Part shown: positions 40,876 to 46,611 of the stretch, piece after piece
How the letters are laid out: each line of letters opens with the position of its first letter
Numbering within the stretch: the stretch's first letter is position 1
From: Pecten maximus
Lineage: Eukaryota
Assembly: GCF_902652985.1 (NCBI RefSeq)
Contig: NC_047021.1
Location: 11,098,001-11,162,000, forward strand
Direction of reading: 5' to 3'
Length of the DNA: 64,000 bases
Translations under genes and position numbers: made by a program
Notes under the pieces: model-generated
What the model saw: only the letters and a program-made list of their open reading frames with translations
The model's database searches: none
What the model was told of the DNA's origin: nothing

Positions 40876-43800
40876 TCAGAGGTACGAAATAACAGTAAAC
40901 ACTGTAAGGAGGATCCACCAAACTCCGGAACCGAACGCTGCTCCCTTGTTTACGCAGGGAGCTACAGGCGTTGGCGTTGTGGGAGGAGTGGGTGGAGGAG
41001 TGGGCGGGGCTGGTAGCTGTTTAAAACATTTAAATACGTTTTTATATTTACTCTCGTTATTATAAAATACCAATGGCTTCCCGAGGGGTGCCGACATATT
41101 AATGTATTTATCATAACCGGCATATTCGCCTTCGTCCCATATGTTTATCCACGTTCCTTGTGGGAGGTAGATATCCCTGGAAGTTGCTCCCTGAGTTACG
41201 ATCGGGGCTACCACCAGGTCAGGACCATACATATACTGGTACATTGCTGCATAGCTTTTTTCAGTCTGGTCTACGAAGAACATGGGACGCTGCACTGGAG
41301 TCCCGTTCTGTATGTACTCTGCCACGGCGGCCCTTGTGTAGTTTGCAAGAAGACTGTGCGCCTTGGAAAGACGCGCAAAGTGTTGAAGTATGTATTTGTT
41401 GGAGTATACTTGTATGTTAGCCTCAGGCTGGTTACCTGTAGAAGAAAAATATTTGCTTATTTAGTTAACAGCTAGTTTTTGCAATTCATATTTAGTGAAC
41501 AGCAGGCGATGTACCAAACAAAAGACATCAACTAATCCCAAACTAACCTTCGTGTGTGCGCATGTACGGCGTGAAGACAGCCATTTCGCCAGATCTGATG
41601 AGAAGTTCAGGTGTACGCTTGAGTCCCATGCTGGCAAAGGTGGTGTACCCTCCTATGTCAAAGTGAGTCATCCCTATTCCTGAAACCCCGGCAGAGAGTG
41701 CTGCCACAACAGTGGAGGCTAGGCCATCCGCAACGTCAAAATTGACATTCTGGTCTCCCGCCCACATCAACGTCGTGAAATTGGAAATACCTTTATAGAA
41801 CATAAGATGTCATCAACGGTATCAAAGAATGTTACATGTACATTAAATATGCTTCTGCATATGTAAATATTGGTTGTTATGTCCCCTTATCTATCGAATA
41901 CATTTCCATGTCATCAATAATGATCACGATCCGTTATCAGTATAAACTCTCCTGGTTCATTTCTGTAAGAGTTATCTACCATTGTCCTGCTATTTTAATA
42001 TCTTTTGCATCGTACATAATCTCAACAGAATGTCTTATTCCGTCTGATCTTTTCTGTGTCTTTTAAACAAACGCATGAAGGTTGTTCCCTCATCCTATTA
42101 ATCAGTGTTATGTCCTTGGGACCCGAAACTTACCTGAATATCCTGATCTCATGAAGAACACCACCTCGCCTTCCTTTCCGGATTCCTGTATCGCAATTCT
42201 GTTCATCTGCGCCCAATAGAGCGGCCATCTGTTATGAAGCGTTTCTCCAGACCCAGTGAAAAATTTGGCTGTTGTTGGAAGATACTCTCCGAAATCTGCC
42301 ATCCATCCGCCTAGACCGATATCTATCATGTTCTTCCTCAAAATAGTGTCTGTAAACAGTGGTTTATACAACACTGGAATTGACCGGCTATATACACTTT
42401 ATGTGATGTGAAACGAGCGGGAAAAACAAAATGTATTGGACCGCAGATGTATATATTCATATCATTGGGAAACTTTTCAACGGAATGCCTTCATATGTAT
42501 ATGCATATTATATTTAATACTAACGAATATCTATTAATTTATTTATATAACTAAAGAAGATGCACCATGCTGCTCTGTTCTGTCCCTGTAGGCCTGGTCA
42601 GTAATTTAAATGATGAAAAGAGTGAACATTTATATTAAGAAGTAAGTTATCAAATGTATCAATATAAATGGGAATTTATATTACTACCATTAATCAACTG
42701 TCAAAATCAAGCAAATGGGAAAACACCACACAAGCTAGCCTGCGTATGAAGGCCTTTCAACAAATGTTGAAAATAACACCCAAATCAAATGGGAACATGA
42801 GGCTACTAGCAATGCTTAACTTGATAGTCTCCTTTAGTTCTTCAGTTCTCAGGATACAGCAACTGCTAGCATTGTATAAAAAAGCCTTTTGGATTTAGTT
42901 TAACCTTTGAATTCCAAAGCAGTTACGTAACAATATCTTACAGATAAGACACAATACGTCTGATAATAACGACACGTACCTTTATACCAAGAGAAGGCGT
43001 TTGGGTTGGTAAAGTCAATAGAGCCACAAAAGAACTCCCCGAAGTTCGTAAGGAGGGTCTTGTCCGTCTTGGGGTCCTTAATGAAGTAACCCTTACTGTC
43101 TGCATCCTTAAATAAGTCGCCGTCTTTGTTGAGATTTGGGTTGACATAGGCAAGAACCCGGATGCCCTGTTTCTGCAGGTCGGCAATGGTCTCGTTCCAT
43201 TCTGGTAAATAAATAGTACATCATTTGTATACGTTTAAACATCTAATACATGTACATTGTACATCGATCTAGTTAATCAACAGTGTATTGATTATCGCCA
43301 TACATTATTATGTATGTAGAGTACATACTGGTATAGAGAGTAGTGTTGAGTTTCCAGTTCCAAAAGACTCTTTTTCCGAATGAGGTGTGGATGTCGCCGG
43401 ACCAATCCTGAATCCAAAGTCCATTCACCTTTATACCGGCATCCTGAACCGTCTTCAGTCTTGCCAACATCTATACATAAATTATCATTTTCCGTCAATA
43501 CGAAGTAGCATTAAAAGTGAGTTAGAATTAACATAATTACATTTGAATTGTCCATACTACGCCCCAGCATATTTAAACATATTATATATTGTTGAAAATA
43601 AAGCATCTACGACTACAAAGCAACCGTCAGACCTTGGACAACAGTTAACACAAAGTAAAAAGTTATGACTATTGAAGCAAGTCCTTTTCTGGTCCCTTAT
43701 TGTGTTACGTACCGTGTCAGTTCCTCCTTGAACCCCTATTGTAATGCCTGAAGTTACCCAGTCCGGGAGTGCAGGCATGCGGCCCTGGAACTGAGACAGT

Positions 43801-46611
43801 GACTGTACCAGCGCGAGCATGGTATCGGCCGTTTTGAAGTAGAACTTTCCAACTATACCCTTGACGAAGATCTCGTGGTAGGTAGGGGAGCTAAAGTCGA
43901 GTACCATGTAGTTAGTGTCCTTGTAGTGAAGGTAGTACTTTCGTGTGCTCACATAAGAAGGTTGGGGGTAATATGTCGTGTGGAAGGCACCACCGCCTCC
44001 TGTCTTCAGGTCCGCGTAATACGTCACGAGGTTACTCTTGTCCCTGCCAACACCTATAATGGCCAAGTGACATATATTTTCACAGAGATTTAACACTAAG
44101 ACATTCCCGCTCATTTGATTGTTGTTTCTTTGAAAAATGCGTGAAGGTTATTCATGATAACAATAAAAGTACAGGCCAAACCTTCTACTTACCTTGTTCC
44201 CTTGTCCAGATGGGGTACTTGAGATCGTCCGCGCGCAGAACTGTAACGATCTCTGGTGGCATGTACGTCCTGTCTCGGAGGTTAAAGTGAGAGAACTGCT
44301 CCCCACCCCCGAACACCTTCTCGGTCTGTTCTGCAACTACCCTCAGCCACAGGTACTGATAGGGAGTGCTTCCCACATCTACTGTCGACACCACAAGGTC
44401 ACTGTCGGAAGTCGACTCGAACGTTACGTTACACTGAAACAGAGTTGAGTATCTGGTGCAATGGTGTATGATGCGAAGAAATGACAATTTCATCTCTTAC
44501 TTCAGACGTGTGTTTTTCACAACGAATGTGAGAAATGTAGTTTCAGTGAATATCAAATATAAAGAGTTTGTTCAGTAATTATGTATGTAGTAACCAGTTT
44601 CATTGTGTTTCGTGTTTTAAAAGTTTCGACATTGGCTGTTAACAGCTGCCATTCCAGGTCGATGATAATTTAATTGATATAGATATATTGACTGCTGTAT
44701 AGTTTGAATTTCGAACAAATTACTGCACTTTGTTACACTGACGTTGATAATTTACATACACCTATTTGTTCTGCTACTATAACACATGCGGCATAACATC
44801 TTAGAATTGTTATATATGCATGAGCTATTACCACATCAATACTCTCAATGCGTACAGCATATAATGTGAATAAAATAGAAGTAGCCAAAACCCAACAACG
44901 ATAAAACTGTCCATAGGGTTGTTGTTGTTTTTCTCTCTTATTAACATAGTGTGATCAGGATTCAATCGTGACATCACATAAAATCAAAGTTATGACGGAA
45001 GTTCTCAGATAAAATCTTATTGACAGTCGTCGGTTGTCGAAAATGTTCACATTTTAATGGTTGAAAACTCGGCCATAGCGATAGAGATTAATTTATCAAA
45101 GAATGCCATAAAAGCAACCAATACCTTTGTGCTATAAATAGTAATATAGTGCTACACAGGCAATATTCCTTCACGTGAAATTCACATGAATTTCACGTGA
45201 AAAAATGTCATGTGAAATTCACGTGAAGGAATATTGCCTGTGTATAAAGTACAGATTTGAATACAAATATAAGGAATAAAAATGCATCGTTGGGTAAGTT
45301 GAGGAGGACATTCTGATATTTGCTTAGCAGTCTCTTAGAGCCGATTTTTTTGGCAACCCCACTTAGGCTTGCAGACATAATTTGGAGGATATTTTACTTA
45401 GATAACAGTTGAGTCTATTGTTTAAAGAACGCAATTAAGGTAGGTTTGGTTGTTGTGGTTTTGATTATAATTTTGAGTCAGGGAAATGACCGAAAAACCA
45501 CTTTAAAGTTTAATTTTTGGTGGCCGTTTGATTCAAAACCTGTTGGGTTTTTGTTATGAGTGTAGAGCATAAATGTAACCAAATTCTCATCAACTTATCC
45601 TACCTGTGCTACTGACATTATTATTGTGGAACATGTCTGATCGGATGCCATCTTAAATATTATAGATAATATTATTATATATGTATGTCATATAGCAACA
45701 TCGGTCCCCTTGTATATCTATAGGAAATGTAAAACCCACCAGGAACTCATCCCCGCTGTACTTGAACAACACGTAATTTTTATCCGCAGTAGTAATATGC
45801 TCAAATGTCCGGAGAGGAATTCGGTCCTGAATTACATTGTTGATATGGAAATTTCCAAGTCCACCAAGGAAATTTGTGTGTCCTTCCCCTACGTATATCA
45901 TAGGGTTCTGTCTCGAATGCTGAAATATCTGGAACAGAACATAAAACATATTTTATATATACCATTTACCATGTACGTACATTACGACATATTCTCTATC
46001 CTTTCTCCGATTTCAGACATGTGTATCTGTTTGAACTACCAGACTAAATGCCAAGTGCTGTAAAACAATGCAGAAAGGACAACATATTAAAGAATATGTA
46101 TTCCTAGCAAAATAGATGATATCATTTGCGAAATGACTAATTGGTTCATTCTCATTATTTGTAAATACAGTGAAGTTCTTAAATAGACTGATGTATTCTT
46201 AATTAAGTGCAATGCTTTTAGTACAAAAAACCAACCACTTTTAAAATGTTACCGGTAGAAAATGGATGTGTACAGTATGATTGGGTTTGTGGCGTTTTTT
46301 TTTTCTACAGAAGTTTGTCTTTATGATGTCGCTAGTCAAACACAACAAGTGATAACGTCCATGTTTGCCTGGTAGTTTCAATACTACACGTATGTCAAAA
46401 TGAATGGAATAGTTTGCCGATGAGGTACCTGTTTAGGTATATAGTGTACCCGTTTAGATCTATCTCTTGGTGTACTTACCGTAATGTTATTAATTGAGAT
46501 GTTGAACCCATCAGGATATGTCAGAGTAAATGCATATTTCTTCTCACCGGAAACGGCGACAAAAAGGTGTACAGCTATCAAGGTGATGTATAACACGGCT
46601 CGTGTCGTCAT
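40876..46611 (-). CDS. yihQ: GH31 sulfoquinovosidase-like glycosidase (YihQ homolog), 777 aa, with signal peptide and predicted GPI-anchor tail
   Basis: Ten phase-consistent GT-AG exons: 46611-46480, 45928-45740, 45651-45604, 44433-44193, 44053-43713, 43470-43329, 43201-42980, 42349-42134, 41790-41548, 41435-40876 (2334 nt). Motifs: GEQFS, EQGVGR, GVQGG, WIQDWSG...SFGKRVFWNW, GWMADFGEYLP, WAGDQ, HFDIGGYT, RTHEGN. Confidence 0.93.
45155..45242. mobile_element. 88-bp MITE with CACAGG termini and TA flanks, in intron 3 of the GH31 gene
   Basis: ta|cacaggcaatattccttcacgtgaa ... ttcacgtgaaggaatattgcctgtg|ta. Confidence 0.8.

Follow-up and report, generated by a model that had tools for sequence, protein, structure and literature searches.

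A spliced YihQ-type sulfoquinovosidase gene in the scallop Pecten maximus, with predicted secretory and glycosylphosphatidylinositol-anchor signals

A 64,000-nucleotide stretch of the Pecten maximus genome (NCBI RefSeq contig NC_047021.1, positions 11,098,001 to 11,162,000; hereafter the window) carries, on its minus strand, an intron-containing gene for a sulfoquinovosidase (SQase) of the YihQ type. The identification of an animal-encoded enzyme of this type is strongly supported by the introns, spliced RNA, signature residues, equivalog profile score, predicted fold and phylogenetic position described below. The gene is a single-copy orthologue of YihQ/SmoI, and we consider it likely that its product is secreted, held at the membrane by a glycosylphosphatidylinositol (GPI) anchor, and releases sulfoquinovose from algal sulfolipid in digestive cells. 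All positions are given in coordinates of the window, and the gene is read on the minus strand.

The gene was modelled from stop-to-stop reading frames and splice-site contexts. It comprises nine coding exons and at least one exon in the 5' untranslated region (5'UTR), and positions 46611 and 40876 coincide exactly with the ATG start and the final base of the TGA stop codon. All eight coding introns are of the GT-AG type and the joined exons encode a protein of 761 amino acids, identical at 761 of 761 positions to the database protein P0151, which carries the RefSeq name 'sulfoquinovosidase-like [Pecten maximus]'. Exons were searched one by one, and P0151 was used for the full-length searches, the alignment and the fold.

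40876..46611, minus strand: coding part of the sulfoquinovosidase gene (ATG at 46611, TGA at 40878-40876; 761 amino acids)
46611-46480, minus strand: coding exon 1
45928-45740, minus strand: coding exon 2
44433-44193, minus strand: coding exon 3
44053-43713, minus strand: coding exon 4
43470-43329, minus strand: coding exon 5
43201-42980, minus strand: coding exon 6
42349-42134, minus strand: coding exon 7
41790-41548, minus strand: coding exon 8
41435-40876, minus strand: coding exon 9
48590..48621, minus strand: 3' end of a non-coding 5'UTR exon, joined by splicing to the exon with the ATG (donor GT 48589-48588, acceptor AG 46613-46612)

The model is matched by transcripts. RNA contigs from four runs in two studies (positions 40700-46690) contain all eight modelled junctions exactly as joints, and at 8/8 junctions these joints read CT..AC on the plus strand. 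A hidden coding exon between exons 2 and 3 was ruled out, as RNA contigs join 45740 directly to 44433. Across the last exon the contigs are unbroken, continuing past the stop codon to 40700, and the transcripts therefore carry the terminal hydrophobic segment of the protein. Upstream of the ATG, contigs from three runs (X1-X3) depart from the genomic sequence at 46613. Their 30-letter upstream consensus matches the window once, at 48592-48621, and they hold a further 210-244 letters beyond 48621, so the 5'UTR exon or exons must be longer than the matched part. In the same frame a TAA stands 15 codons 5' of the ATG, and no other ATG intervenes; 46611 is thus the start codon and there is no N-terminal extension. 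A preliminary description of this DNA had proposed ten exons and 777 amino acids; the first figure holds only if the 5'UTR exon is counted, the coding exons numbering nine by RNA-supported splicing, and the second is 16 too many, since the same splicing gives 761 and the upstream stop bars an extension. Its argument that spliceosomal introns speak against bacterial contamination is borne out by the eight GT-AG introns, and the terminal hydrophobic segment, which it had held should be looked for in transcripts, is present in the RNA contigs.

A single close copy of the gene was found in the genome, the other matches being distant GH31 genes with 25-28% identity. Part of the stretch, as judged by the share of its words, is contained in nine of the 24 listed P. 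maximus runs. Eight of these nine contain approximately 30% of its words, a share near that of the exons, and the remaining 15 of the 24 contain almost none. Tissue labels are coded, and this pattern hints at tissue restriction.

Two of the introns contain repeats. In intron 2, a 37-nucleotide inverted repeat at 45153-45244 (arms 97% complementary, 18 nucleotides between them) resembles a miniature inverted-repeat transposable element. RNA contigs from other loci, with unrelated flanks, pile up on it to a summed depth of 164-224 in two runs, compared to approximately 3-27 on the exons, indicating that it is a dispersed repeat transcribed elsewhere. The start of the 5'UTR intron is filled by a 40-bp minisatellite of approximately 24 copies (47651-48594), each unit of which, on the minus strand, repeats the splice donor that is used (…ACGAG|GTAAGC…). 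The intron therefore opens with a row of look-alike donors, and the RNA contigs use the first of them, at 48589/48590.

Exons 2 to 9 each match the NCBIfam profile NF007746 (PRK10426, the YihQ equivalog), in order, over profile positions 30-678, and P0151 scores 766.4 bits against this profile, for which the curated equivalog cut-off is 553. Pfam searches of the exons returned PF01055, PF21365 and, weakly, PF13802, whose single-exon match fell short of the gathering cut-off. In a pairwise alignment with Escherichia coli YihQ (yihQ taken from NC_000913), the scallop protein is 42% identical over 659 amino acids and retains all eight functional residues, namely the five positions of the QQRWY signature, both catalytic aspartates and the counterpart of H537. 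The positions below come from this alignment and from an alignment of 48 sequences (A1).

43728..43730, minus strand: Q296 (YihQ Q262), first glutamine of the QQRWY signature; pairwise and 48-sequence alignments
43360..43410, minus strand: Q322, R335 and W338 (YihQ Q288, R301 and W304), recognition of sugar hydroxyl and sulfonate; alignment
42294..42296, minus strand: D441 (YihQ D405), catalytic nucleophile in WMADFGE, invariant in 48/48 aligned sequences
41753..41755, minus strand: D507 (YihQ D472), general acid/base in WAGDQ, invariant in 48/48 aligned sequences
41552..41647, minus strand: Y543 (YihQ Y508, contacting the sulfonate via water) and H574 (YihQ H537); alignment

Every catalytic and signature motif quoted in the preliminary description is present in the 761-residue model: WMADFGE at 438-444, WAGDQ at 504-508, GVQGG at 294-298, IQDW at 321-324, KRVFWNW at 334-340 and DIGGY at 539-543. 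An AlphaFold2 model built from the 48-sequence alignment has a mean predicted local distance difference test score (pLDDT) of 87.8 and, together with the Pfam matches, displays the GH31 layout of an N-terminal beta domain, a (beta/alpha)8 barrel and C-terminal beta domains. The best 23 matches of the model in the PDB are all solved SQases (BmSQase and those of E. coli, E. rectale and A. tumefaciens), with template modelling (TM) scores of 0.95-0.97, root-mean-square deviations (rmsd) of 1.7-2.0 Å and approximately 40% identity. The next GH31 enzymes follow at an E-value of 1e-44 and 17-19% identity, so that the E-values of the two groups lie over 40 orders of magnitude apart.

The nearest proteins are all annotated as 'sulfoquinovosidase-like' and come from P. 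maximus itself (100% identity), Argopecten irradians (84%) and Mizuhopecten yessoensis (81%). A maximum-likelihood tree was reconstructed from 33 animal and 15 bacterial sequences and rooted on E. coli YicI; the bacterial sequences are best hits only and algal sequences were not included. The tree groups the scallop protein with YihQ and its relatives. All 33 animal sequences form one clade with a Shimodaira-Hasegawa-like approximate likelihood ratio test (SH-aLRT) support of 100, and this clade broadly follows the species phylogeny: scallops are nested within Pteriomorphia (SH-aLRT 96), bivalves within molluscs, and the deuterostome phyla are separate. This implies vertical inheritance at least since early bilaterians and no recent transfer. 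On the choice between ancient retention and horizontal transfer, which the preliminary description had left to a GH31 phylogeny, the tree thus speaks for retention within animals.

Some animal paralogs differ at the signature positions. Y543 is replaced by phenylalanine in four of them, from Nucella (P0174), Babylonia (P0157), Lytechinus (P0022) and Branchiostoma (P0178), and the Nucella paralog P0174 additionally has methionine in place of Q322 and lysine in place of R335. These four paralogs, with altered sulfonate-binding positions, are candidates for a changed substrate.

Both ends of the scallop protein carry features expected of a secretory, membrane-attached protein.

46546..46611, minus strand: residues 1-22, signal-peptide-like N-terminus (R4, a 16-residue hydrophobic core and V-S-G, followed by EKK)
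40957..41013, minus strand: residues 717-735, Pro/Thr-rich stalk (Pro/Thr run 717-732), not in bacterial SQases; pLDDT below 50 at 728-744
40879..40950, minus strand: residues 738-761, GPI-signal-like end (candidate omega site N738, with glycine at omega+2, or G740, then a spacer and a hydrophobic run)

At the N-terminus, n-, h- and c-regions are present and the -3/-1 rule predicts cleavage after V20-S21-G22. The Kyte-Doolittle maximum over 10 residues is 2.79 in the scallop protein; it exceeds 1.8 in nearly all full-length animal homologs, whereas the 12 bacterial homologs compared reach at most 1.77. In the AlphaFold2 model residues 2-20 form a lone helix, and both hydrophobic ends are isolated helices. 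The protein has 10 N-glycosylation sequons, compared to three in YihQ, and four cysteines, compared to 11. It also extends approximately 45 residues past the C-terminal beta domain, where bacterial SQases end. Here the stalk is followed by N738-K-G or G740-A-A, a Gly/Ser spacer to G746, and an uncharged hydrophobic run of 15 residues (V747-L761) that reaches the last residue and leaves no cytosolic tail. The motif N-(K/R/S)-(G/A) is kept in three scallops and in the fragment P0002, and the candidate omega region corresponds to a conserved Cys-x-Asn-(Lys/Arg)-(Gly/Ala) site. Hydrophobic C-terminal tails were found in most of the mollusc homologs compared, and the N-terminal hydrophobic core, stalk and hydrophobic C-terminal end occur in animal homologs and not in bacterial ones. 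Judged from sequence, this layout fits the rules for GPI signals, with N738 the most likely omega site and G740 otherwise. The layout is unlike that of a type I anchor, for which a longer helix plus a cytosolic tail would be required. The signal peptide, Pro/Thr stalk, and small-residue site with terminal hydrophobic segment of the preliminary description thus fit both the rule-based checks and the comparison of homologs.

RNA contigs differ from the genome at two sites in this region, one at 40937, read as A742V within the spacer that follows the candidate omega site, and one at 40994, altering P723 in the stalk. These differences are probably alleles. In three deuterostome paralogs the C-terminus has no hydrophobic tail and reads KDEL (Diadema setosum, P0177), HEEL (Antedon, P0170) or ADEL (Ptychodera, P0165). 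These endings resemble endoplasmic reticulum-retrieval signals and would add a third predicted location to those of the anchored and secreted forms.

One further feature separates the scallop protein from YihQ.

44218..44274, minus strand: residues 161-179, a loop insertion of 16-19 amino acids relative to YihQ (gap in the pairwise alignment and in A1; pLDDT below 50 at 165-173)

The loop is present in seven pteriomorph sequences of A1 (scallops, oysters, a mussel and a pearl oyster) and in none of the 41 others, that is, not in heterodont clams, other molluscs, other phyla or bacteria. At the same site, two pulmonate snails carry an insert that is shorter and unrelated to it.

Much of the biology proposed here has been described for other animals. 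According to the accessible text of a preprint (Uchida et al., bioRxiv 10.64898/2026.02.11.705467, 13 Feb 2026), animal SQase homologs occur in 65 species, almost all of them aquatic invertebrates, and conserve the same seven residues. SignalP predicts signal peptides in most species and NetGPI predicts anchors in most molluscs, 'particularly bivalves', with the catalytic domain facing the extracellular side. Expression in digestive organs is reported for other molluscs and amphioxus, and the hosts are described as lacking a downstream sulfoquinovose pathway; the authors propose that diacylglycerol or glycerol goes to the host and sulfoquinovose to bacteria. The scallop Mizuhopecten is among the 12 bivalve genomes that they analysed, and giant clams have no GPI prediction and express the gene also in the symbiont-bearing mantle. 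The same text credits Speciale et al. 2016 with having earlier seen YihQ-like animal sequences. Two recent papers on sulfoquinovose in bacteria say nothing of animals. The main text does not mention P. maximus by name, although the species may appear in figures, and we found no mention there of the pteriomorph loop insertion or of KDEL-like paralog endings. The digestive role and the secreted or anchored architecture of animal SQases have therefore already been proposed. The preliminary description had rightly suspected that eukaryotic homologs might already be annotated, as the scallop proteins carry the name 'sulfoquinovosidase-like' and the P. maximus gene is already named in RefSeq. It had taken the anchored extracellular architecture and its physiology to be undescribed; both are described in the preprint, whose hypothesis matches that interpretation point for point, so the physiological reading is not new.

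By analogy with characterised enzymes, the scallop protein would act as a retaining GH31 alpha-sulfoquinovosidase, in which D441 attacks the anomeric carbon of the sulfoquinovoside and D507 protonates the leaving glycerol or diacylglycerol, while R335, W338 and Y543, with Q296 and Q322, would select the 6-sulfonate sugar. Whereas the bacterial enzymes are cytoplasmic, a cleavable signal peptide would direct the scallop protein into the secretory pathway, and it would become N-glycosylated. Most likely it would then be attached by a GPI anchor near N738-G740 and stand on the short Pro/Thr stalk at the outer face of the membrane. The apical membrane of digestive cells, phagolysosomes derived from it, or both may be the place of action, where sulfoquinovose would be released from algal sulfoquinovosyl diacylglycerol (SQDG) or sulfoquinovosyl glycerol (SQGro). 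Such a digestive-gland, brush-border physiology is plausible.

Several points weigh against this proposal. Expression is seen, but the tissue is not readable from the coded run records, and the signal-peptide and GPI calls of our analysis are rule-based. The 15-residue tail could itself anchor the protein weakly in the membrane, or be removed by some other process. The pteriomorph-specific loop is modelled with low confidence and its effect is unclear. Single-protein queries with E. coli YihS, YihT and YihV found no downstream sulfoglycolysis enzymes genome-wide, a result obtained without a positive control and not proof of absence. The benefit to the host is unclear, as lipases alone free fatty acids. 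In the accessible text of the preprint, enzyme activity is reported for no animal SQase.

The strongest competitor, although we regard it as rather unlikely, is that the same enzyme enters the secretory pathway but is not GPI-anchored. It would then either lose its tail and be soluble in the gut lumen or lysosome, or stay on the membrane through its hydrophobic end, acting as a tail-type anchor. Bivalve digestion is largely intracellular, which would suit such an enzyme, and the C-terminus varies among animals: the tail is missing in pulmonate snail, Lingula and Panulirus homologs, a transmembrane segment with a basic cytosolic tail is present in those of Branchiostoma and sea stars, others have the KDEL-like ends, and the giant clams of the preprint add the case of a bivalve lacking a GPI prediction. 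In the scallop, however, the tail is only 15 residues long and uncharged to the last, conserved small residues precede it at the distance where an omega site would be expected, and the accessible part of the preprint reports NetGPI anchors in most bivalves, with Mizuhopecten among those analysed, all of which favours the GPI-held form. Drift of this GH31 glycosidase to another substrate, either plain alpha-glucosides or another 6-substituted sugar, is very improbable. The missing assay of any animal member in the preprint's accessible text, the lineage-specific loop and the altered signatures of the paralogs above (tyrosine to phenylalanine in four, with the two further changes in one Nucella copy) leave some room for it, but the eight functional residues are unchanged in the scallop and in nearly all animal orthologues across more than 500 million years of divergence, which points to continued selection for sulfonate binding, and the profile score lies above the equivalog cut-off. 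Bacterial contamination, recent horizontal transfer and a dead copy are refuted. The closest non-animal relatives are bacterial and, at 41-45% identity, about as close as other animal phyla; against this stand the eight RNA-confirmed GT-AG introns, the location of the gene inside a contig (C7) of the 918 Mb genome assembly with its reading frame intact, and the fully supported animal clade that follows species relationships.

Beyond the secreted, GPI-held sulfoquinovosidase that we favour lies a more specific possibility, which we consider doubtful: that the pteriomorph loop and the GPI tether adapt the enzyme to intact SQDG in thylakoid fragments at the digestive-cell surface, rather than to soluble SQGro as in bacteria, or that the scallop itself uses the released sulfoquinovose via an unrecognised pathway. 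Neither idea was found in the accessible text of Uchida et al.

Sulfoquinovose ranks among the most abundant organosulfur compounds, and freeing it from sulfolipid has been regarded as work for bacteria (and algae). If animals encode gateway enzymes of their own, grazers and filter feeders would take part in the marine cycling of sulfur and carbon, and such enzymes could shape their gut microbiota. To this the window adds a well-supported P. maximus gene model, backed by RNA, and a few minor points of comparison.

Elsewhere the window contains two tandem arrays, one at 8077-9161 (36-bp unit, 30 copies, 96% matches), to which the strong GC/AT skew of the 8-10 kb composition bin is due, and one at 58621-60777 (51-bp unit, 42 copies). 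An open frame of 118 codons at 53616-53969 on the minus strand has a hydrophobic start followed by a cysteine-rich segment and is possibly an exon of a small secreted protein. Positions 6693-6829 are 137 N, an assembly gap or masked sequence.

Among known systems, the scallop protein is most directly compared with E. coli YihQ (PDB 5AED/5AEE/5OHT), the founding GH31 sulfoquinovosidase, with which it shares the three-part GH31 fold (TM score 0.96-0.97, rmsd approximately 1.7 Å), the nucleophile, the acid/base, the QQRWY signature and H537. Unlike the scallop protein, YihQ is cytoplasmic, is encoded in the yih sulfoglycolysis operon, and has no signal peptide, stalk, hydrophobic end or 16-residue loop at the position of scallop residues 161-179. 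The scallop gene has introns, and neither next to it nor elsewhere in the genome did we find counterparts of yihS, yihT or yihV. In having its catalytic domain outside the cell on a membrane-attached Pro/Thr stalk, the predicted ectoenzyme may be likened to brush-border-type gut glycosidases, an analogy of layout without homology in the anchor region. Agrobacterium tumefaciens SmoI (5OHS/7OFX), the Eubacterium rectale SQase (6PNR) and BmSQase (8R56) share its fold at approximately 40% identity; the first two signature positions of SmoI are the K/E variant (KERWY), and the scallop protein has the Q/Q form, as in YihQ. The animal SQases of Uchida et al., such as those of Tridacna crocea and Mizuhopecten yessoensis, belong to the same orthologous group; the digestive role and the fate of the products proposed for them are the same, and they share the predicted signal peptide and, in most bivalves, the GPI signal.

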